Of a stretch of DNA of 64,000 nucleotides, positions 1,257-37,792 are shown piece by piece. Made by a program: the position numbers and the translations under genes. Position 1 is the stretch's first letter; each line of letters starts with the position of its first letter. The DNA lies in contig JAMWBK010000008.1 of assembly GCA_029953675.1 (NCBI GenBank), forward strand, positions 1,736,001 to 1,800,000, read 5' to 3'. Source of the DNA: Rhodosorus marinus CCMP1338 (Eukaryota > Plantae > Rhodophyta). The notes under the pieces were generated by a model. The model was not told the origin of the DNA. It saw only the letters and a list, made by a program, of their open reading frames with translations, and did not search any database.

Positions 1257-1659
1257 CTAAAACTGAGTCTCTAGCGTTCGAATGCTGACTTGTTGTTCGA
1301 CGCGCGTCATCATCATCAGCGTCTCCCCTTTCCGCTCCTCATGGTAGATAGTCTCTGAATAAATTGTTGTTGTTGAACTAAGATATTGCGAGGTAGCTCT
1401 GTCTTGTACGACCTCTCTTTTCGCTTTTTACTAAAGGAGACCGGGCTTAGCTACCAACACTCGCGCATCAAGAATTTTTTTCGTCGCGCAAGCGACTTTT
1501 CCCCGGTTTGCACGCTTCCCTCCCTAGTTCTAAGTTCCTTTTCACGCCTTGCGTAGCTCTTCAGGCTATGCTAATAAAGCCCTACCTAGTTCCTAGTGCC
1601 TTTTAACGGTTTGCGTAGCGCTGTAGGCTATGCTAATTAAGCCAATAAAGCCCAGTACC

Positions 1660-5989: not shown

Positions 5990-6230
5990 GTTCGTGAATC
6001 GGACAGAAGTTCTCAGGATCAGCAATGAACAATTGTGATTGGGGAACTATTACACCTACGCTTGGTGTGCTGCCCACGTCACATGCGGAGGTAGCCGTGT
6101 CTCAGAGGACAGAAGCTCTCAGGATCTTCAACGACGCAATTGTATTTTCGAGTTTCCGGGTGACAGCATGCAGCTTCGATCCTACGGTTGGTGTCCGACC
6201 CATGTCGCATGCGGAGGCAACTAGCCGAGT
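5990..6230. repeat. Degenerate internal duplication (offsets 105-125 bp), possibly a decayed repeat-protein gene
   Basis: GGACAGAAG(T/C)TCTCAGGATC at 6002 and 6107; CCTACG(C/G)TTGGTGT..CCCA(C/T)GTC(A/G)CATGCGGAGG at 6056 and 6181. Confidence 0.7.
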
Positions 6231-6316
6231 CACAGAGGGGGGTGGCGCTATGGAAATTCATTCAAGGAAACTAACACGGATGTACGGCAACAGGAATGAG
6301 CGTGTTCGTGGGGTGA

Positions 6317-6493
6317 GAGAGCCATTAAAAGCTTGAAACATCAGCCAGTTTATAAAGTTGAGCTCCGCTAGTCAGAAAATTAATCTAATCAGGGCCCCCG
6401 CCTCATTGAGAGCCATTAAAAACTCGAAACATCAGCCAATTTATAAAAGTTGAGCAAGTCACAAAAATTAATCTAATGAGGGGGGGGAACCTC
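6317..6493. repeat. 91-bp-period tandem direct repeat, 2 copies
   Basis: GAGAGCCATTAAAA...GAAACATCAGCCA.TTTATAAA(A)GTTGAGC...AAAATTAATCTAAT starts at 6317 and again at 6408. Confidence 0.85.
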
Positions 6494-6603
6494 AACGCGC
6501 GAGGGTGCCCATTATCCATGGCCTCGTGCAAACCGAACGTATACTTGCTAATCCCGTGACGCTTAGTCGCTGAGATTGGATCTGAGGGAACCACAGAAAG
6601 TAT

Positions 6604-8127
6604 CTAGAAATAGATTTTGTCTGCTCCTGGACCGCCGTTGATGATATCTCGACCACCACCTAGGGTAATCGTGTCGTCTCCATCCCCGCCAAAAATCGTG
6701 TCATCTCCAGAACCAGTGACGATCTTATCATCACCCTCACCTCCTTCAACCCTATTGTCCCCAACCCTGTCCGTTAGTTTGTCTTCACCGTCCCCGCCAT
6801 AGATTTTGTCATCTCCTTCGCCACCGAAGACATCATCATTTCCATCATCTGCGTAAATAACGTCATCTCCACCACCACCGTAAATCTCGTCCTTGCCCTC
6901 TCCACCCCTAACCCTGTCCACTCCATCTCCTCCTCTGATGTAGTCATTGCCGCTGCCACCGAACAGCTGATCGTAGGTATATCCTGTGTCCCGAACGTCA
7001 TCATCGCCCGCACCGCCTTGTGTGAGATCACGGCCACTTCCAGTTTCAATGATGTCATTACCATCGCCACCATAGTTTGTATTGTTTCCCTCTGAATCCT
7101 TGATCGTGTCATTTCCAGCACCCCCGAAGTTCTTATCGTGCCGTGCGCCACCATCCAAAAAGTCCTTACCACCACCACCATCTAGGGTATCATTATTACC
7201 CTCGCCGAAGAGGGAATCTGAACCGGATTCCCCAAATATCTGGTCCTGACCATCACCACCGTAAACAATGTCGTCTCCGGAACCGGCGTAGATCTTATCG
7301 TTTCCACCAAGGCCATAGATGAGATCGTTGCCGTTGGTCCCGAAGATAATATCATCGCCTTCGGTTCCGAAGATGATGTTGTCGATTCCCGGAGGAAGCG
7401 ATGGTTGTGGCTTTCGAGTCGGTGATGGTGACGGAGCCTGAGTCTCTTGCGGAGGGTCAGTAGGATTTGGATTATACGATGTTACAGTGGGAGTCGAGGT
7501 AGGTTCAGGATCGGGAGGATCCCGGCAGGCAAATGGAACCTGACAAAATAGTTCGTCGTCACCATATGTTCTACACTCTTTGCTGGAGGTGTAGAGCCAA
7601 ACCGTCGCTCCTGTAGGGCTTGACGCCTTCACCTGCACTGCAAGGCACGCTTTCGTATTGCAGCAGCTGTCAGCAGTCGACTCGATCTGATCTAAACAGA
7701 TGAGAATTCGATCTTTCGGGTCTGGATCGGTCCTTACATCCTTCACGATCGGATGGCGGGCACTGCCCGTGGGAAGATTGTTGTTGCAATTCTCGAAGAC
7801 CCCGGCATATATCTTCTTAATTTTTATGCCATCGTTAGTTTGGAAGTTCACCCGCATACAAGGACCACGACCAGAGACTTCCCTGTTAACAATGCAATAA
7901 GAGCCCAGCTTTACATTATTTTCATCTCTCAAACTCGAACACAAGGCGCGGAAGAATCCGTTATGCGCAGAACGGTAACCAGCCCTGCACGTCCCCGCAA
8001 CGCCTCTCGCTGCAGGAAGCAACTCAACATCCGTCGAATCCAGGCCTCTCTGTCCTACCCTGACACCTCCAATATCAGAAACGCCCAACACCAAAACCAC
8101 AACAAACGCAACACCCAACTTGCCCAT
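6604..8127 (-). CDS. Secreted protein: signal peptide, 12-Cys domain, Pro/Thr linker and ~28 RTX/hemolysin-type Ca2+-binding nonapeptide repeats
   Basis: 507-aa intronless ORF. Hydrophobic N-terminus MGKLGVAFVVVLVLGVS; uninterrupted GGxGxDxUx repeats (e.g. GGDGQDQIF, GGAGNDTIK, GGEGDDKIY) run to the C-terminus. Confidence 0.9.
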   Translation of the reverse strand: MGKLGVAFVVVLVLGVSDIGGVRVGQRGLDSTDVELLPAARGVAGTCRAGYRSAHNGFFRALCSSLRDENNVKLGSYCIVNREVSGRGPCMRVNFQTNDGIKIKKIYAGVFENCNNNLPTGSARHPIVKDVRTDPDPKDRILICLDQIESTADSCCNTKACLAVQVKASSPTGATVWLYTSSKECRTYGDDELFCQVPFACRDPPDPEPTSTPTVTSYNPNPTDPPQETQAPSPSPTRKPQPSLPPGIDNIIFGTEGDDIIFGTNGNDLIYGLGGNDKIYAGSGDDIVYGGDGQDQIFGESGSDSLFGEGNNDTLDGGGGKDFLDGGARHDKNFGGAGNDTIKDSEGNNTNYGGDGNDIIETGSGRDLTQGGAGDDDVRDTGYTYDQLFGGSGNDYIRGGDGVDRVRGGEGKDEIYGGGGDDVIYADDGNDDVFGGEGDDKIYGGDGEDKLTDRVGDNRVEGGEGDDKIVTGSGDDTIFGGDGDDTITLGGGRDIINGGPGADKIYF

Positions 8128-26567: not shown

Positions 26568-28769
26568 ATGGCGATTAGGGTAGCGGCGAGTCCCACTATT
26601 GTAAACGTTATCACCGATGCGGTGTTAATTGTTTTGAACTTGTTGTGGTTGAAGTTTATGTCCGTTCTGACCGCTTTGGATCTGAAGAGGGATCTGAGAA
26701 ACGGGGAACGGTTGTTTTCTTATGAGCACCTGGGCACTTTTCACAATCTGCACTACGGTGTGAGTAAGCATAGATATTTGACGAGGGAGAAGATGATGGA
26801 TGATAAGCTGCGTCGACACTTCCGATTGCACACTTTGAAATCAGTGTTCTTGCTTATCGTCGCGATCATGCTTGTTCTCCTCCACATTCTTATTGATTAC
26901 GGACTTGGTTTCGATACGGAGCCGACAGTTTCCAACGAAACAGATATTTACGAAATGATGGGTCTCCAAGCAAACAGCAAGGTCTTCACAAATTTTGAGG
27001 CCTATCGTAGGATGGTTGTCGAAGAGGACTTTTGCGATCATCCTGATGCTCCGTCTACCTGTAATCATGATCAAGTTACAACGCTCATTGCGCGTTTGTG
27101 GGAGCTAAACAGAGAGACGACAGGGTTCGCAAGGACCTTGTACAATTCGCCGTCTATGAGCGACGCTGACTTCCTCGACTACATGGAGGCCGACTATGTG
27201 TCCTTGAGGAAAGATGGGCAGTCTCCAGCGGCCAACGCTTGCCTCATTAGAGACGTAACAGCGCTGGAAAAGTTTGAAGGGAATTTTGCATTCACCGAGG
27301 AGGACTGCCAGATCGATGAGTCGTATGTAACAATGGTCCGGGTTGATGGTCGGGGAAAACCTGTAGTCAACGTAAGATTGTTAGCGCCGAATGCCAAAAT
27401 GCAAGCAATGTATGAGTCTGTTGGCGTGGAGGATGTACTCAGCCAAGTTGCGTACGCTAGTGGCAAGGACGAGAGGCAAGGGGAAACGACCATGTCGATT
27501 AGGAACGTAGATGCGCCCGGAAAGAACCCGAATAATCTTAGCACGATGGCCGTGGAGTTCGACAGTAAGCTTAGTTACGTAGACGGCCAGAAACAGACCT
27601 TCAGCACTGTGCAGTTGACCAGGCGGGGCGAAGGCGTCTTCGCGGATCCAGATTTTGGTTTGCTTATGGAGACGAAAATAGATACCCCTATCCTCGATCG
27701 AGATCCGTGTCTCGCGCTGAACGATGCTCAAGGACGTGGAAGGCTAAATTTGCAACTAAGGGTAACCCACCAAGGGGAATTCTGCGGAGAGTTCCTTCCT
27801 ACGTTTGCTACCCGGACCTGCTCTTCGTACCCCCTGGCAGCTTACGACGAAGTACCAAACGATGGCATAGTTGGCATACAGGTTGCCGGTGTTGTGATAC
27901 TGGTTGACAAGACCAGCAAGTGTGGTAAAGCGGCGTACGAAAAGTACGGAAGCCAAATGGACGAAGATGTTGATGAAGACAGGAATCAATTGTTCTTGAG
28001 TGTGGTCTTGGACATTGCCTGCGTTAGGATAACGGAGCCTGATGCTGAGACCGTTCAGCACAGTTGCGTGTATGGAGCGGATAGTGTGCAGTTCCAAGAC
28101 GGCGAGTGGAAGGCGTTTGAAGACACTACTGGGGATTTAGAGGGTATTGTTCCCATTCCTTTGAGAACCGAGCTCAGCTGGGTGGGTGGATCTGTAAACG
28201 GGGGCTCGTCTACAGAGGTCGCCGCCGTGTTTACGGAGATGAAGAGGAACTTGAATACTTTCTACCCGGAACTCCATTCACAGACAACCTTCAACATGAT
28301 GCGTGGCAAAATTTTCGGTTTGAAAATGCATGAGAGCATGCTCGCAGTGATGGCTACGTTTTCCAGCCAGCTCACCGCAGTGAATCGGGAAATGGGCCTC
28401 ACAGGACAAGAATCTGTGGCCGTGCTGGAGGGACCGTACCTGGGTGGTGTGCTGGCGGTACTGATTATCAGTGGAGTTGCATGCCTGGTTGTTTGTCTCC
28501 GGTATCTGCAAGAATGGTACGAATACCGGAAGCTGGGTGTCCGGGTCAACGTCCCGCTCTCCATAACGGAGTGGGTCGAGGCGGCGCTTACACGAGAGGA
28601 CCTCGAAGATCAAACGCCAGGGGCGGAAGCCGGGGGAACGAAGAAGGACATTGATGGGGTTTACGAGTTGACGGCTAAACGGGTGGATGATCCTACCCAG
28701 CAGGAGTCGCGAAGCTACGTTGCTTTCTCGGAGAACACTCAGCCTTTGGAGAAAAGTGAAAGCAACTAA
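26568..28769 (+). CDS. Novel 3-TM membrane protein with a large Cys-containing ectodomain (paralog 2, 733 aa)
   Basis: Intronless ORF; 34 of the first 56 residues are identical to paralog 1. Shares LTALDLKR.LR.G.RLFSYEH.G, LHILIDYGL, KDERQ, MRG..FG, SSQ..AV.R, GG.LAV..I.GVA and VPL.ITEW. Confidence 0.9.
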   Translation: MAIRVAASPTIVNVITDAVLIVLNLLWLKFMSVLTALDLKRDLRNGERLFSYEHLGTFHNLHYGVSKHRYLTREKMMDDKLRRHFRLHTLKSVFLLIVAIMLVLLHILIDYGLGFDTEPTVSNETDIYEMMGLQANSKVFTNFEAYRRMVVEEDFCDHPDAPSTCNHDQVTTLIARLWELNRETTGFARTLYNSPSMSDADFLDYMEADYVSLRKDGQSPAANACLIRDVTALEKFEGNFAFTEEDCQIDESYVTMVRVDGRGKPVVNVRLLAPNAKMQAMYESVGVEDVLSQVAYASGKDERQGETTMSIRNVDAPGKNPNNLSTMAVEFDSKLSYVDGQKQTFSTVQLTRRGEGVFADPDFGLLMETKIDTPILDRDPCLALNDAQGRGRLNLQLRVTHQGEFCGEFLPTFATRTCSSYPLAAYDEVPNDGIVGIQVAGVVILVDKTSKCGKAAYEKYGSQMDEDVDEDRNQLFLSVVLDIACVRITEPDAETVQHSCVYGADSVQFQDGEWKAFEDTTGDLEGIVPIPLRTELSWVGGSVNGGSSTEVAAVFTEMKRNLNTFYPELHSQTTFNMMRGKIFGLKMHESMLAVMATFSSQLTAVNREMGLTGQESVAVLEGPYLGGVLAVLIISGVACLVVCLRYLQEWYEYRKLGVRVNVPLSITEWVEAALTREDLEDQTPGAEAGGTKKDIDGVYELTAKRVDDPTQQESRSYVAFSENTQPLEKSESN

Positions 28770-29431: not shown

Positions 29432-30055
29432 CTAGTTAATTGGAATGGACGTGCTCGGAGCCTCCGAAGGGACGCTCTTGGGGATGGTGATCGTCAGAAT
29501 TCCATCCTTGACGTTGGCAGATATTGCTTCCCTCTGTACACTCTTCGGAAGCGGGAACTGCCGTTTAAATTGTTTTGCCGTCGTCCAACCTACAGATTGC
29601 TCAGCCTTTGGTTTCTCTTCCTCCATGTAGGGGGTGGCCTCTGTCGGCTCAGCCGCAGCCTCAGTCTCCTTGACCTGCGCGGTGCTCTTCTGCATCTTCC
29701 CAGAGGCTACCAGAAAATCGCCAACGATCTCAACGTTGATGTCTTCTTTCGCAAACCCAGGCACTTCCAGTCTAACCACGTACTCTGTATCCTTGTTTAT
29801 GAACTCCCCTCTCGGGGCAGTCCGAAAGCTCCCATCCGAGTACCCGCTCGATGCCATCTCCTGAAACAGCGGGTTCAGGATCTCGTTGAAGAGGGGACTG
29901 GTCCAGAACGCATTGTTCATACGCATGGGGCTCACTCGCATGGGTCTCATCATGCCTCGTCGATAACTAGGACCACATCGACAAGTCGTGTTCACCCTAG
30001 TCACCACGGGACTCCCGACTCCCGCTACACTACCAACAAATCCAACAGAGTTCAT
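29432..30055 (-). CDS. HSP20: Small heat-shock protein (HSP20/alpha-crystallin), probably plastid-targeted
   Basis: YVVRLEVPGFAKEDINVEI...L..SG and FKRQFPLPKSV..EAISANVKDGILTITIPK...IPI; Arg/Ser-rich N-terminus with a GFV motif. Confidence 0.92.
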   Translation of the reverse strand: MNSVGFVGSVAGVGSPVVTRVNTTCRCGPSYRRGMMRPMRVSPMRMNNAFWTSPLFNEILNPLFQEMASSGYSDGSFRTAPRGEFINKDTEYVVRLEVPGFAKEDINVEIVGDFLVASGKMQKSTAQVKETEAAAEPTEATPYMEEEKPKAEQSVGWTTAKQFKRQFPLPKSVQREAISANVKDGILTITIPKSVPSEAPSTSIPIN

Positions 30056-30411: not shown

Positions 30412-31609
30412 AATCATTTCCTCCTAAATAATATAGTCCCTTTTTATTGGATATCTATCCCGCTTGAGATCTTGAATTAGATAATAATTAGTATGGAATG
30501 TCCTCAACGGATTTATTGTTGGCCTAGAACTAGTTAGGATTTCTGGTTTACTAGATATCGATATGTCTTAATTATGACCTTTTTTAGATGAATACTTTGA
30601 ATTTTAGGGGTATATTGGAAAGAAATGGTATTATTTAGTGTCGGAAATCTTTTTATAGGGTTGTCGTGTTTTTGATGTGGCATCAAAAATAACATTGAGG
30701 TTGGCATTGCTGGCATTCGGTGTTGTCCGAGTTGTGCGTTTTTTTATTTGTGTGCTTTCCGTGCTCACCTCTTTAACCAGCACTAGATTTTGCTGGAAGG
30801 TGCTCTGGCATCGGTATCTGAAAATCCCTCCTTGTATGGTCGGTTTTCACGCTGTATTTACACCCACCGAAGTTCGAGTGCCGATCTCTCCATGAGATCT
30901 GGTGAAACCGGGTTCAGTCCATAGTTGTTCTCAGTTCTTGTAACGTATTTTTGGGGGTGTAAGTGTGTATCCAAGGATTGTTATGTCAGCCACCAGTCTA
31001 AGCCGTATGTGATGCTGAGTTTCTTTATTTCCGTACGCCGCCGCAGACGTTGCGCTTGTAGTCTGTTCGAGGTTTGGCATGACTCATCAGTAAAAACTCC
31101 ACACGACATACATATGCTAGGCATCTTCAGTAACACAACACCAGTAAGCGCCCCATCCAAACAAAGCCCTCCACCACAGACAACAGAGTACTCGATAATC
31201 CCTGCCGTGCCTCCAGACCCTTCCGATCCCCTGAAATCATCCAATCCACTCCGCTCGTGTACGAGCAAATCATTCGATCACCAAGTATCATCTATCATAT
31301 CTGAAATTTGTGATGTGCACCTGCACAGAGGGCGGAAACCTCCCTTCACCTCGCTCGAAGCCTGAAAGGCATTATGATGATTGTTTTCAATCAAAAACAA
31401 TCATCAATCACTAGGATAATAAAGATTGATTCTCACTCAATTTCGCATAATCGATTGACTCTCTATCATTATCCTGGATATTGACTGTAGTTAAGAAAAA
31501 TTCCCACAATTTAGATTTGTCAAGTGGGACAGTAAGCCAGGAGCGTAAAGAGGTCTCTGGAACTATTGCTGTCCCAGATAGTGATGAGACTTGTCTTCTT
31601 GAGCGGAAG

Positions 31610-32055
31610 GCTTTCATCGCCTTTGCCGCTTTTGAGGAGCTTCAGGTTCGGAGGCGTTTGGATTGCCTTTGGACTGTTTGCGATCTAAAGGCTTCTCTGG
31701 TGAGCTTTCAAATGCTTGATTTGTATTGTCCTGTTGAAGTCGTTGAGGCTCTTCTTCGGAGCTCAAGTGTTTCCATCGCCTTTTGTGGATTTGAACAGCT
31801 TCACATTTGGAGTCGTTTCGGATTTGCTTTTGCGCTGCGATTCGTCCTGTTGAAGTCGTGCAAAGGCTCCTCGTCTGAGCTCAAGCGTTTCCATCGCCTT
31901 TGCCGCTTTGAAGAGCTTCAGTTTCGGAGTCGCTTGGATTTCTTTTAGACCGTTTGCGATCCAAAGGCTTCTATGTTGAGCCTTTTAAATGTTTCATCGC
32001 CTTTGTCCTATTGAGGGCCTTCAGTCTCAAGAGTCGTTATGGATTGCCCTTGACT
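31610..32055. repeat. Degenerate modular repeat, 4 copies of a ~60-100-bp core
   Basis: TT(C)CATCGCCTTTG...TTGA..AGCTTCA..TT.GGAG.CG.TTGGAT at ~31614, ~31771, ~31888 and ~31992; GTCCTGTTGAAGTCGT at 31729 and 31844. Confidence 0.8.
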
Positions 32056-32201
32056 TTTTTGTCTAAAGACCTTTTTTTAACGCTTCTCCGCTGAGGTGAG
32101 GTTTGGTGTTGGGCTTGGGGTGGGGGTTTCGTGGAGTGAAGGGGAAGAGCGAAGTGAATGTGTACATATTATACTGGGAGCGGACCCATTTTTGTTTAGC
32201 A

Positions 32202-35200
32202 ATGGGTGAAGTTGCTGAAGGCTTTGAGACTGGGCTGAAGGAATTCGAAAGCCGGATCGGGGGATGCGAGCACGCGCTGAATTTGTTTGCGAGTGCCGGC
32301 GATCGAAAGGCTTTGGAGCTGGTTGAAAGAGAGTTAAAGGCCGTTGGCGGGGTTTTGGAGGATTTAAGTCTTCTACCTGATGAATTGGAAACCAACGAGG
32401 AGTCGGACGCAGCTTGGTCCCGTCTGGAAATTGCAAGGACAAGCCGAGAGGAGTTGTCCAAACAAATGCGTCGGCTTGTGCAGGAAAACCGCGCGGTTCT
32501 TGCAAATGCAGCGAGACAGGAGCTCCTCCAGGCTGCTCAGAAAGATACTGGAAAGGGAGAGAAGTCAAGCATGGGACAACTCGCAACCTCAATCACGTCA
32601 GGCATGAGGAGAACACATGCCCTCCTAGAGAACGAAGTAGCCAGGACGTCCACAATCACAGAGGTAGATGCTGACTTCCAAGCACCACTCCAAGTAGACG
32701 CTCACTAAACGCTCTCATACCAACTCCCCAAAACAGGTCGTTGAGGACCAAACTTCAACCATAACCAAGACCGGAGACGTCTATCGAGATCTAGGCGCTA
32801 AAGTAACCACAGGACAGGGCACAGTACGACGGCTACGAACAAGGTAACCTTTCCAAGCTCCAACACGAATCTGGAATCTCTTCCATAGCACCATCTCGAG
32901 CTCTATCCTAAGGCTACTCCATCCTAAGGCTCTTGCAGCCCGAAGAGAGTACGTCAGGACCCGGCGCTTCGGGTTACTTCGCGGGCCACTTAGCTCAGTA
33001 GAGTTCGCTCAATAGATCCATTTTGGACCCAAGTAGATAAACTTTTAAGACTGGAACCACTAATCTGAACGCACCTTCCCGTCTTCTTCGTCAAATCCAT
33101 TAGAGAGAGAGCTGAGCGATGGGCCGTAAACGTTGCTATGATTTTCTTCCTGGTGTCGGTAGCGTTTGTACTTCAGCGTCGTGTGAGCAACACCTTTGTG
33201 GTTCGAAGAGTGGTAGAACCCGCCAGTCGTGGAGTCTTCATGGCTTTGAAATGGCCTGTCGCTCAGTTGAAAGAGCAGCTTGGGATCGACTTCGATGAGA
33301 CCTCACTGGGTAGCATGTTAGGGAAGAAGGATCCTTTCAGTAGTGGCTCAGCTCTTGTGGATTTAGGGTCTCAAGGCGATGATGAGGATGATGAAGTGGG
33401 GGGTATTAAAGCGTTCAAGAAGCTGGAGAGAGAGAGGCAGTTTAAGAACAAGAAGACTCCGCTTGTGGAGTATGTGGTCATGCCCGAGGAAGAGGATCCA
33501 TCTTGGGAGCCACCGTTCGACTTGGAAGGAGACAACGAAGGTGAGATCGATGAGAAAAGGGAAGAACCTTCCGATGAAAGAGAGCCAGAGCCAGGTTTGG
33601 GAATGGGCGAACAGAAGGAAGCAGTACCTACTGATGCAGGAGAACCAGAACCTGGAACTGGACTAGGTGAACAGAAAGAAGCGAAAGAATCTGATGCAAG
33701 AAGAGAACCAGAGCTGAGTGAGGGAATAGAGGAACAGCAAGAAGCAACAAAATCTGCTGAGATTGGGGACGGTCGAGATGACGACCTTGACGAGCGCGTG
33801 AGGGCCCGACAGGCGCGGATAAGAGAGCGAAGGAGAAGAAGATATGAGCAAGAGGATGCCGGTCCATCCACTGAGATCCTGACGGAAGACCCTGAGCAGG
33901 CCCAGGAGCGTGAGATCGAGCAAAACCTTGAGCAAGAGCGCGTAGAAGAAGAAATCAATGAACATTTCAAGCTGGAGTCGGTCGACGATGAGAGGGATAT
34001 CGAACTCGAGACTTTTTCTGGTGAGTTCACTCTGACTTGTGCTCGCGGGCGCCGTGGAGGTCTTCGACTTGCCCCTTTATTCCTCATTACGTGATCACGG
34101 AGTGCTTCCCCTCATTTTTTTTATCTGTTGTCGTATGAGCTAGAAGACGGAGCGGAGTCTCAGGAGGAAGGCGAGGAAGAAGTGGTAGAACCCGGCTGCG
34201 AAGCCAGCGGAGACGGCCAGTGCAAAGCCGTTGGAGAATCCGAAGAGAAGAAATCGATCGATGATAAACGAGGTGATTTCTTGAACATGTGGAAAGGTCG
34301 ATGTGCTGGGGACGCATTATGTGGCTAAACATCTTTTTCTGTTGTCCAAATGGTTCTGTTCAATCCGTACGGTGTAGATCTTGAACAAGATGATGATGGC
34401 TTTGGAGATGAAAGCGAACTCTCGTCGGAAGATAGCTCTAGCGAAGGTGACTACATAGCAGACGCAGAACAAGAGACAGCGGCTGCAGTCGAGGACGGCG
34501 ATGTCCGGAAAGATCTTGAACAAACTCGCGAGATTTCTTCGGAGTCGGAGCTGGTGACTGATGAACAAGAGAATTTGGTGGAGGACGGAGAGCAGGCTGC
34601 TCTCGAGGTGCTGAACGACGAACCTTCAGGAGTCGGAGAGGATTCAGATGAAGGTGGTCCTGGAATAGAAGGAGACTCCGGCGCCGTGCTTGAGGAGAGC
34701 AACGTGCAGCAGGTGACAGATCACGCAGGAGAGCTTGTGATTGACAAAGAACATGGCCAAATTGAAGCAAAGGAAGAGGAAGAGGAGAGATCCGCGCCTT
34801 TGAGCGACGATAGAGCAGGGAAGGAGAAGGAAGAAGATCTCTCTGTGGCATTCGGAGAGGAAGCCGGTGAGACCCTCCTGACTGGGAATGGAGCTGGACC
34901 GGAGGAAGAGCACGACTCACGAACCAAGAGCGAGGAGGGAATTGTGCGGGAAGCAGAGTACTCGCTGTCTGAGGCTGAGGCTCCTGCCGGCGCTCATAAC
35001 CCTGACATGCACATAAATTCCGATCAGCACCCTGAATCACGTGCAGACGATGATAAGGCCGAAGACACCGAGATGGAGCGTGTCGAGGATGGCATGGACC
35101 ATGGCGATGAAATCAGCGAAGAGCATGTAGTCGAAGTATCTGCCGAAGAGGCTGAGCAGGTTGATCCTGAATCTGCCGTTGATGATCAAAGCTACGACAT

Positions 35201-35867
35201 GGGTATGGGGAAAGAGTCTCAGTACACTGTAGATAGGGTGGAGAGCTTGGAGGAAGAAACTTCAGGAGGAGACAGAGGGAATCTAGAGCAAGGTTCCGAA
35301 GGCAGTTGGGCAGGCGAACCCACTACGCGGGCGCAACAGGCAGAGGAGGAAATGGGTGAAGGGACTGCAGAACATGAAGAGTTCGTGGAAGCGTCGGGTC
35401 AAGAAACTAATGAACTGAACAGCTACTCGCATGTCGCAGTTGACGATGAGAGCTCCGACGAAACTCACCACGGCAACACTGACGGCGATAAACTCAAACG
35501 CGATTCTCAAGCCGCGGAAATGGATGAAGTTATCGATGAGAGCACGATCGCCTCCGACATTGGAGTTCGCTCTGAAGCGCAGGACGTCGAAGGGGACTAT
35601 GAAGAACACGGAGTTGGAGAGGACGAGGACGCCGGGGCGCCAGACGATATTCCAAGTATGGAGGCTCATGTTCGGGTCGGTGCAACTCCTTCAGACACCA
35701 CGGAGTCCACGCTCGAGGAGGAAACCGCTGGGGAGGCTCTCACGCTTGAGCACTTTGCTGATCAAGTGGATCCATCCAGTCCGAACGCGAGTGAAAATCT
35801 ACTTGATGAGGAAGGCAACTACGTTTTCGAGCACGAGGCAAACCAATTCGAAGAATACGAATTATGA
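32202..35867 (+). CDS. SEC20: SEC20 (ER Qb-SNARE) with a very long acidic luminal tail; 5 exons, ~1034 aa
   Basis: Exons 32202-32663, 32737-32843, 33104-34020, 34144-34272 and 34378-35867. All GT-AG phases are compatible and the total is 3105 nt; an alternative donor at 34297 is also in phase. Sec20 motif SITSGMRRTHALLENEVART...DQTSTI, TM WAVNVAMIFFLVSVAFVL followed by QRR, C-terminal EYEL. Confidence 0.75.
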
Positions 35868-36304: not shown

Positions 36305-37792
36305 TCAAAACATGGATTGGTTGGGCGGCACGGCACAGATCCCACTATAGTCGAGGAGGGTGCCGTTATACAACGTCGTGGTTACCTCAGATCTGTCCCA
36401 CGGGAGGTTGAAGACGAACCTGGCTTTGATTCTCGCTTTTCCGTACGTCTGCTCGAAGGGCAGGCCCTGGATTTGACGATTGATGGTCGCGGAGTAGAAG
36501 CCGGCCTCATCGATGGTCGTTGAGTACCACCTCGTGCTGAACCCTTTGTTGTTACCGTTCTCGTTCCAAAACACTAGCCAGTAGTGAACCGTTCCAATCG
36601 GACTATCCGCGTGCAGTGTGAACGAAAACTGAAGGTTGAAAGGGCATTCGTCTATTACAGGAGGCGGCGGGCCATGGAAGGACTGCAACTTCAACATCCT
36701 CGCCCTCGTAAAGCTCTTATACTTCACTTGGAAGCACCATTCCAGGGGTGGCAGCTCGACGGGGGTAGGTCCTGGAGGAGGCGGTCCTGATGGATATGGA
36801 GTTGGCGTTGGCGTCCAACCATGGCCACCCCCAACGTTTGTTACTCCCAGAAGCTCAACGTGGTCCGGGAACCAACTTCGAAACGCGGGTATGGAGGTGA
36901 CATGATTTTCGACGGGGTAGGAGGAGGACGCTGCTCCTTGAGTATACCTCGCCTCCCCGAGAAAACGGAAATATAGCTGCTCATAGATCAAGTCGTTGAC
37001 TGGGTCCATTATTGAGGCCTGCACGTGATCCTTGGCGAGCTCCTGCTGGAGGTTCAGGAGGATGCTCGATCCAATCACATCGTTAACCGCCTCGAGCTTG
37101 CCTGAAATATTTGCTATGTGGCTATTCATCCAGAATGGAGATGATATCGAACCCACAGACATCTCAACGGCCTCAGGTGAAAGTTTCAATCGCCACTCCT
37201 GACCCCTTGTGTAGTAGGACTCAAATCCGTAGGTGACGGTGATTTTATAGTCGATTAGATCACCTCCGTAGCCCTGGTACCCGTCCTGACATTTTGTCAT
37301 CGTGTCGTCTCTGAAGCACCCGACTCGGGTTTCCATTCCAGACGTATCCATGGTGAACTCTTGCAGTAGGAAAGAGTCGTCGCTGCCTTGGTGAGTGTCT
37401 ATGAGGTACTTTGTCGAACCAGAAAGTATCTCGCTCAAATAAATCTCGTAATTCCTGTTCGAATTTGGCTCTAGTGGACTCTTCTCCAACGGCGTCGCTG
37501 GGGCGTTCACAAGGTGCTTCGTTCCTCCGTTGGAAAGCTGGATCCAGCTGCCCTGTGGGTCGTGGAACCTTGTCTGTGCGTCTATCCATTGTCCATAGTT
37601 GTTCAGCTGAATTCTGAATTGGCTCAGCTGCGGCACGATGGCGTTGTAAACATAACCAGTGTGTATACAGAAATCCTGCACAACACTCAAATCTCTTGGT
37701 GTCTCGTTGCCCACTTCCTTCGGAGGCGTAGGAGCCCCACAGGCCATTCCAGAAATCACTAGCCAACACCATAAGAGCTGGAATGCCACCAT
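36305..37792 (-). CDS. Secreted protein of unknown function (two domains separated by a Pro/Thr linker)
   Basis: 495-aa intronless ORF; signal peptide MVAFQLLWCWLVISGMACG; linker WTPTPTPYPSGPPPPGPTP. Confidence 0.8.
   Translation of the reverse strand: MVAFQLLWCWLVISGMACGAPTPPKEVGNETPRDLSVVQDFCIHTGYVYNAIVPQLSQFRIQLNNYGQWIDAQTRFHDPQGSWIQLSNGGTKHLVNAPATPLEKSPLEPNSNRNYEIYLSEILSGSTKYLIDTHQGSDDSFLLQEFTMDTSGMETRVGCFRDDTMTKCQDGYQGYGGDLIDYKITVTYGFESYYTRGQEWRLKLSPEAVEMSVGSISSPFWMNSHIANISGKLEAVNDVIGSSILLNLQQELAKDHVQASIMDPVNDLIYEQLYFRFLGEARYTQGAASSSYPVENHVTSIPAFRSWFPDHVELLGVTNVGGGHGWTPTPTPYPSGPPPPGPTPVELPPLEWCFQVKYKSFTRARMLKLQSFHGPPPPVIDECPFNLQFSFTLHADSPIGTVHYWLVFWNENGNNKGFSTRWYSTTIDEAGFYSATINRQIQGLPFEQTYGKARIKARFVFNLPWDRSEVTTTLYNGTLLDYSGICAVPPNQSMF

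Follow-up and report, generated by a model that had tools for sequence, protein, structure and literature searches.

The window analysed here is a stretch of 64,000 nucleotides (nt) of the red alga Rhodosorus marinus (Stylonematophyceae), taken from contig JAMWBK010000008.1 of assembly GCA_029953675.1. On its forward strand, at 32202-35867, lies the gene for the Rhodosorus Sec20, a Qb-SNARE called BNIP1 in animals, whose product carries beyond its membrane anchor a long, acidic extension that is predicted to lie in the lumen of the endoplasmic reticulum (ER). All positions are those of the window; they equal the coordinates of the locus under study (L001) plus 26201.

Gene structure and transcripts

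In the list of open reading frames (ORFs), this interval has on its forward strand three long ORFs together with two small pieces of exon size. When four introns are removed, the five exons form a single open frame of 1034 codons that ends in ...FEEYEL-TGA:

32202-32663, forward strand: exon 1, residues 1-154, with the start codon, the N-terminal helical bundle and the first half of the SNARE motif
32664-32736, forward strand: intron 1, 73 nt, GT-AG, donor gag/GTAGAT
32737-32843, forward strand: exon 2, residues 155-190, the second half of the SNARE motif with the zero-layer-column residue Q159
32844-33103, forward strand: intron 2, 260 nt, GT-AG, donor aag/GTAACC; its retention leads to an immediate TAA stop
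33104-34020, forward strand: exon 3, residues 190-495, the membrane-proximal basic stretch, the transmembrane helix and the initial 280 residues of the tail
34021-34143, forward strand: intron 3, 123 nt, GT-AG, donor ctg/GTGAGT, with a stop inside it in this strain
34144-34272, forward strand: exon 4, residues 496-538, with the only two cysteines of the tail
34273-34377, forward strand: intron 4, 105 nt, GT-AG, donor gag/GTGATT
34378-35867, forward strand: exon 5, residues 538-1034 and the stop codon, most of the acidic, disordered tail

Judged by their letters, the donor contexts of all four introns are plausible. The ORF at 33138-34094 terminates within intron 3. The match to the Pfam family PF03908 (Sec20) is assembled from exons 1, 2 and 3 and spans junctions 1 and 2, so that these two junctions restore an intact family domain including its transmembrane segment. 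No Rfam family was found in or near the gene, the 260-nt intron 2 included.

Transcripts of a sister strain, R. marinus MMETSP0011, carry the same arrangement. The product of Transcript_33055 (P0001) is complete at 1046 residues, is 75-77% identical to the model over 100% of the query, and is the only close relative found in a collection of 5.8 billion proteins. The two proteins are collinear from the MGEVAE start through the ...FEDYEL end, and the junction peptides predicted by the model, TEVVEDQ, RTRERAERW, ETLSEDGAE and DDTRDLEQ, are all present exactly in P0001, with TEV/VEDQ (junction 1) and DDTR/DLEQ (across intron 4) joined. An isoform of the sister strain (P0003, 1087 residues) keeps intron 3 in frame without a stop and gains 41 residues; the 123-nt length of this intron is a multiple of three, and the intron is stop-free in the sister strain and stop-bearing in the window strain. 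In Transcript_33057, intron 2 is kept, and a 190-residue ORF (P0004) and an 845-residue ORF (P0002) lie on the same transcript, which places the Sec20 part and the acidic part on one RNA. The earlier note, made from the letters alone, had proposed that the separate-looking ORFs are joined by four phase-compatible GT-AG introns, and the open 1034-residue frame, the Pfam match and the sister-strain transcript all bear this out. It had also named what would speak against such a join, namely acidic ORFs with a transcription start site of their own and no spanning transcripts; the sister strain presents a different picture, since P0001 spans the junctions and Transcript_33057 holds both ORFs.

The public annotation of GCA_029953675.1 divides the interval into two genes, at 32202-34328 and 34350-35867 (6001-8127 and 8149-9666 of L001). 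The first annotated product, KAJ8903057.1, has 556 residues: exons 1 to 4 are joined, intron 4 is read through, and the protein ends in ...DDKRGDFLNMWKGRCAGDALCG, halted by a TAA at 34326-34328. The second annotated gene, of 505 residues, begins at an ATG at 34350. UniRef names the 556-residue product 'Sec20 C-terminal domain-containing protein'. It might be argued from the annotation itself, and from the frequency of intron retention in the sister-strain assembly, that two adjacent genes exist as annotated and that the long product reflects read-through or an assembly artefact. However, only 21 nt separate the first stop from the second ATG, which leaves room for neither a terminator nor a promoter; a canonical GT-AG intron takes out exactly this stretch and keeps the frame; and the complete sister transcript joins DDTR to DLEQ and contains nothing that corresponds to GDFLNMWKGRCAGDALCG or MVLFNPYGV. 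The residues to either side of the intron 4 junction are conserved, and a 556-residue product would be deprived of the conserved terminal signal. Given the short gap, the GT-AG intron that it belongs to and the joined transcript of the sister strain, two separate genes were rejected as highly improbable. The merged model of 1034 residues is better supported than the annotated split, and a correction of the annotation is the practical result: KAJ8903057.1 and the 505-residue 'gene' should be merged into one product.

A further relative appears in environmental data. A 1020-nt metagenome contig from the Joint Genome Institute (JGI) encodes a 194-residue fragment (P0005) that is 90-91% identical to exon 1, which by its sequence indicates a third, closer Rhodosorus-like organism in that data set. 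The tail region of this organism was not found in two metagenome scans, made with exon 5 and exon 3 peptides.

A Sec20 SNARE with a single membrane anchor

The identity of the protein, which the earlier note had read from the sequence as a Sec20 SNARE, is secured by a full-length family match, by the SNARE layer residues and by a profile match to the yeast structure. Residues 128-217 align to positions 3-92 of the 92 positions of PF03908 with 42.5 bits (E=6e-11; gathering cut-off 27 bits), and the score rises to 44.5 bits when residues 1-281 are taken alone. A single-sequence phmmer search of the PDB gave no match, yeast Sec20 included; a profile of 150 homologs found yeast SEC20 (8eki_A) as its best match in the PDB, at E=9.1e-8. 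The features of this part of the protein, beyond the exons already listed, are:

32202-32552, forward strand: N-terminal helical bundle, residues 1-117
33120-33176, forward strand: transmembrane helix WAVNVAMIFFLVSVAFVLQ, residues 196-214, followed by R216

An AlphaFold2 model of the cytosolic part and anchor, built with an alignment of 64 Sec20 sequences, has a mean predicted local distance difference test score (pLDDT) of 89.6. It contains helices at residues 2-32, 35-55, 65-95 and 97-116, all with pLDDT above 90, and then one continuous helix at 123-231. The N-terminal helical domain of Sec20 is the part that binds Tip20; for the domain predicted here, a Foldseek search of the PDB with the confident N-terminal model returned no match at E<=1e-3, the hits being generic three-helix bundles and syntaxin Habc domains only. 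In the SNARE motif, at about residues 128-190, sixteen layer columns from M135 to L187 fit the family consensus; the zero-layer column holds Q159 here, serine in 49 of 64 homologs and glutamine in 5 of 64.

The segment WAVNVAMIFFLVSVAFVLQ is the sole hydrophobic segment of the protein, with a 19-residue Kyte-Doolittle maximum of 2.11 and a next peak of 0.69. The single transmembrane helix comes from exon 3, in accord with the earlier proposal that removal of intron 2 supplies the otherwise missing anchor. Two residues beyond it, on the luminal side, 63 of 64 homologs share the arginine R216. A juxtamembrane motif, RR(V/L)..S....F(V/I)VRP, is common to many red-alga-like relatives.

From established SNARE biology, the SNARE motif must face the cytosol, and the tail would therefore lie in the ER lumen; the luminal placement made in the earlier note is thus supported by SNARE topology. 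A conserved pair of cysteines and a conserved glycosylation sequon in the tail, described below, are compatible with it.

Composition and conservation of the acidic tail

The tail after the transmembrane helix (residues 215-1034) comprises 820-821 residues, of which 31% are aspartate or glutamate (D+E) and 8.5% lysine or arginine (K+R). Its net charge is -186, its isoelectric point 4.05, its fraction of charged residues 0.40 and its net charge per residue -0.23, so the chain of some 820 D/E-rich residues that had been read from the letters is confirmed. Its only cysteines are C514 and C522 (34197-34223), both conserved in the sister strain, and its only conserved N-glycosylation sequon is at N1008 (NAS here, NSS in the sister strain). 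In a full-length AlphaFold2 model built from two sequences, the mean pLDDT is 39, with values of about 30 over nearly all of the tail; the exceptions in the tail are helices at 414-441 and 453-482. The tail features of note are:

33402-33524, forward strand: conserved island GIKAFKKLERERQFKNKKTPLVEYVVMPEEEDPSWEPPFDL, residues 290-330, at least 93% identical to the sister strain in 15-residue windows
33774-33857, forward strand: predicted helix DDDLDERVRARQARIRERRRRRYEQED, residues 414-441, pLDDT about 80, inside the conserved island 405-445
35688-35864, forward strand: conserved C-terminal segment, residues 976-1034, containing the N1008 sequon
35853-35864, forward strand: terminal tetrapeptide EYEL, a candidate KDEL-receptor retrieval signal, DYEL in the sister strain

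A composition of this kind accords with the suggestion of the earlier note that the tail is a Ca2+ buffer, possibly coupling ER Ca2+ to Golgi-to-ER fusion; it would then be a high-capacity, low-affinity luminal buffer or sensor comparable to calsequestrin, the calreticulin C-domain, HRC or junctate. The charge just described would favour it, the tail would occupy a compartment with high free Ca2+, and the increase of acidity with tail length throughout the family (see below) could reflect selection for charge; junctate, an ER membrane protein of type II whose luminal tail is acidic and binds Ca2+, provides a precedent. However, the tail has no Pfam match (exon 5 included), no EF-hand-like loops (D.[DN].[DN]G, the DxDxDG type), no run of D/E longer than six residues and, in its coding DNA, no tandem repeats. 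ER SNAREs are generally of low abundance and would account for a small share of bulk buffering. In addition, the rapid turnover of the tail and the span of 5 to 1185 residues among functional Sec20 proteins indicate that the tail is no requirement of the core fusion machinery. What speaks for a coupling to Ca2+ is the composition, and nothing beyond it was found: a Ca2+-binding domain, loops, long acidic runs and repeats are all absent from the tail. We consider this function unlikely.

The two strains are 92% identical over the cytosolic part and transmembrane helix and 72% identical, with seven small indels, over the tail. The frame has remained open for about 2.4 kb in both, so that the tail is maintained coding sequence. 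Identity varies significantly along the tail (chi-square p=1.5e-4), and conserved islands lie at residues 215-248, 290-330, 405-445, 478-493, 562-580 and 976-1034, and the last 74 residues are 82-88% identical to the sister strain. The predicted helix at 414-441 coincides with a conserved basic patch (RVRARQARIRERRRRRY) amid the acidic chain. The islands at 215-248, 290-330, 405-445 and 976-1034 probably bind luminal partners.

Long tails in the Sec20 family

The extent to which such a tail is peculiar to Rhodosorus was assessed with an exhaustive phmmer search, in which residues 1-281 were compared with 1.84 billion cluster representatives at E<=1e-3. This search returned 167 proteins, all of them distant Sec20s with 17-36% identity; tail statistics are drawn from the best 150 of the 167, of which 146 have a transmembrane segment at the aligned position. 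Among these 146 representatives, the length of the tail after the membrane segment is continuous from 5 to 1185 residues, with 23 tails shorter than 20 residues and 12 of at least 500. Longer tails are richer in D+E, which climbs from 3% (<20 residues) to 26% (>=500 residues; Spearman rho 0.66, p=2e-14), while the K+R content falls. None of the 23 shortest tails ends in -EL, compared with 61 of the 105 tails of at least 40 residues, 78 of which end in [DE][LIF]; the -4 residue is H, R or K in 47 of the 61 tails ending in -EL. Long-tailed lineages that could be named are the Gracilariaceae, Tetraselmis, Chlorella and Microbotryomycetes yeasts, whose tails are mostly acidic and mostly have an H/K/RDEL-like end:

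Gracilariopsis chorda, PXF47109.1: 984 residues, end not -EL
Gracilaria domingensis, KAI0566197.1: 962 residues, end not -EL
Tetraselmis sp. GSL018: 1416 residues, RDEL
Chlorella sp. A99: 590 residues, HDEL
Phenoliferia psychrophenolica: 947 residues, HDEL
Sporobolomyces pararoseus: 1195 residues, HVEL
Sporobolomyces roseus: 1125 residues, RVEL
Microbotryomycetes sp.: 1200 residues, RDEL
Pseudohyphozyma bogoriensis: 1500 residues, RDEL

The two Gracilariaceae proteins finish in non-acidic peptides rich in Cys or Leu, a sign that the 3' exons of their models may be wrong, and KAI0566197.1 bears in GenBank the label 'lipase', probably a misnomer.

The architecture of a Sec20 domain, a transmembrane helix, a long acidic tail and an H/KDEL-like end is, as far as can be read from these sequences, recurrent across lineages. 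The earlier note had taken the long tail to be exceptional among Sec20 proteins, a view in need of correction given its recurrence in red algae, green algae and Microbotryomycetes. Where it had called for comparison with orthologs in related algae, the outcome is that long acidic tails recur in other algae and in yeasts and are unalignable between lineages. When the Rhodosorus tail was compared by BLASTP with every other long tail of the family, no similarity emerged, and hhalign of the Rhodosorus tail pair against the Gracilariaceae tail pair gave a probability of 0.1%, an outcome compatible both with and without a shared ancestral tail sequence. Between Gracilariopsis and Gracilaria, identity is 66% in the cytosolic part and transmembrane helix and 23% in the tail. 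With the tail as a query of its own, a search returned nothing but the products of the window itself, and word-indexed homolog searches with the full protein, the Sec20 part and the tail returned only Rhodosorus, acidic low-complexity words saturating the candidate list. No discussion of long or acidic luminal Sec20 tails was found in the literature. The gene encodes a protein of a known kind, a Sec20 whose luminal tail bears a retrieval signal, in an expanded version undescribed in the literature yet present elsewhere.

The sharing of composition without sequence could be explained if the tail were a steric or entropic element of the lumen, a polyanionic brush that holds the protein statically in the ER, limits its entry into vesicles or acts as a spacer, with the terminal signal as a back-up. 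The tail is strongly charged and disordered, its end-to-end distance as a random coil is estimated at about 16-28 nm, comparable to the width of the ER lumen, and common composition with unrelated sequence in unrelated lineages is the signature of a function that is physical and not specific to sequence. The proposal is nevertheless purely inferential, most Sec20 proteins work with tails of 5-200 residues, and the conservation of the last 59 residues, together with the -EL end, points to the tip, rather than the bulk, as the selected part. A steric function is rather unlikely in our estimation.

The C-terminal tetrapeptide

The EYEL end noted earlier is confirmed, and its (E/D)YEL form is conserved between the two strains. 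Compared with the PROSITE pattern for KDEL-type signals, [KRHQSA]-[DENQ]-E-L, EYEL agrees at the extreme C-terminus, with E at -2 and L at -1, and departs from it at -4 (E, or D in the sister strain) and at -3 (Y). In human cells the -3 position accepts any residue but proline, and ERp18, which ends in EDEL, resides in the ER (PMC2140024). In K. lactis and S. pombe, whose receptors differ at the gatekeepers D50 and E117, DDEL and ADEL act as genuine signals (PMC8248988). Yeast SEC20 encodes a membrane glycoprotein sorted via the HDEL system (Sweet & Pelham 1992, as referenced in PMC2120172 and PMC2140024). Because an -EL end is the norm of the family, EYEL is plausible as a working retrieval signal on sequence grounds; if it serves as one, either the Rhodosorus receptor should be altered or retrieval should be weak.

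A broader proposal can be framed from these observations, in which the long polyanionic Sec20 tails of Rhodosorus, Gracilariaceae, Tetraselmis, Chlorella and Microbotryomycetes would be a recurrent, selected luminal module, either steric or responsive to ions (Ca2+ or pH), that tunes the retention or activity of the retrograde SNARE, and not the product of neutral growth of a linker. The specificity of the Rhodosorus signal would have changed, implying a co-evolved KDEL receptor. We regard this proposal as quite unlikely.

Neighbouring features

A degenerate array of direct repeats lies just upstream of the Sec20 start, at 31587-32061. It comprises 3-4 copies of a unit of about 105-160 nt that are 60-89% alike, has the core TTTCATCGCCTTTGCCGCTTT..GAGCTTCAG, and is unreported by Tandem Repeats Finder (TRF); it could represent a repeat of the promoter region, or else an element in decay. 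Other genes and features of the window are:

1386-1498, forward strand: full-length gene for the U5 spliceosomal small nuclear RNA (Rfam RF00020, 58.2 bits, gathering 40), the sole Rfam match in the window
26568-28769, forward strand: flanking ORF of 733 residues, annotated as a 733-residue gene
29432-30055, reverse strand: small heat-shock protein gene (Pfam HSP20, E=6.5e-19), about 2 kb upstream on the opposite strand
36305-37792, reverse strand: flanking ORF of 495 residues, annotated as a 480-residue gene

The products of the 733- and 495-residue flanking ORFs have no Pfam match at E<=0.01; the latter has a signal-peptide-like start and a proline-rich patch.

A probable type II Sec20 with an expanded luminal linker

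Saccharomyces cerevisiae Sec20p has the same Pfam Sec20 domain as the Rhodosorus protein and is likewise a type II ER SNARE, with its N-domain and SNARE motif in the cytosol, a single transmembrane helix and a luminal C-terminal domain ending in -EL. The luminal domain of the yeast protein has about 90 residues and ends in HDEL, whereas the tail of Rhodosorus has 820, is polyanionic and disordered, and ends in EYEL; pairwise identity between the two is below phmmer detection. The long-tailed Sec20s of the algae and yeasts named above share the Sec20 domain, the transmembrane segment and a K+R-poor tail of 372-1185 residues with 20-33% D+E. Those of Microbotryomycetes, Tetraselmis and Chlorella have a basic -4 residue, unlike the acidic -4 residue, followed by tyrosine, of Rhodosorus. 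Human BNIP1 and the short-tailed Sec20s belong to the same SNARE family and have the same predicted role in Golgi-to-ER fusion, but are true tail-anchored proteins with 5-20 residues beyond the membrane segment, and would differ in their route of insertion. Junctate (itself of type II, with an acidic tail on the luminal side), the C-domain of calreticulin, calsequestrin and HRC have an acidic luminal polypeptide in common with the Rhodosorus tail, but these Ca2+ buffers show no relationship to it in sequence or domain, and the Rhodosorus tail is without long acidic runs or repeats.

The best explanation, which we hold to be probable, is that the gene encodes a type II Sec20 whose acidic luminal linker is expanded and evolves fast and carries a variant ER-retrieval signal. 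With 820 residues following the transmembrane helix, the post-translational tail-anchor (GET) route is excluded; the protein would instead be inserted co-translationally as a type II signal anchor by the signal recognition particle (SRP) and Sec61, through which its tail would be threaded. Once in the ER, Sec20 would pair with Ufe1/syntaxin-18, Use1, Sec22 and the Dsl1/NRZ tether, and the resulting complex would fuse COPI vesicles arriving from the Golgi in Golgi-to-ER retrograde transport. Any Sec20 that left the ER would be brought back by the KDEL receptor by way of its C-terminal -EL, as in yeast Sec20p-HDEL. The bulk of the tail would serve as a linker that joins the transmembrane helix to the retrieval signal, constrained in composition (acidic, soluble, disordered) and for the most part not in sequence, and such luminal linkers would have expanded repeatedly in the Sec20 of several lineages. 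Weak Ca2+ binding would be a physical consequence of the charge of the tail and not a demonstrated function.

Several observations weigh against this explanation. The transcript support comes from a sister strain that is only 77% identical, and not from the sequenced strain. No coding DNA of the ortholog is on record for MMETSP0011 and none was found in the two metagenome scans. The conserved islands, the conserved cysteine pair and the basic helix indicate that the tail is not merely a neutral spacer. At the C-terminus, an acidic -4 residue is rare among the 61 Sec20 tails ending in -EL (D in 4, E in none), and Y at -3 is confined to Rhodosorus among the Sec20 tails surveyed. The canonical human receptor, moreover, excludes DDEL and ADEL (PMC8248988).

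The biological points that follow are modest and do not touch any open question of long standing, and a function in Ca2+ handling is speculative. An H/KDEL-like end appears to be usual in the longer-tailed Sec20 proteins, and an acidic-Y-E-L end, if functional, would widen the known range of retrieval signals. As a family, Sec20 covers everything from proteins that are truly tail-anchored to type II proteins whose luminal tails reach about 1,000 residues, and this range of tail lengths implies differing routes of membrane insertion within one SNARE family.

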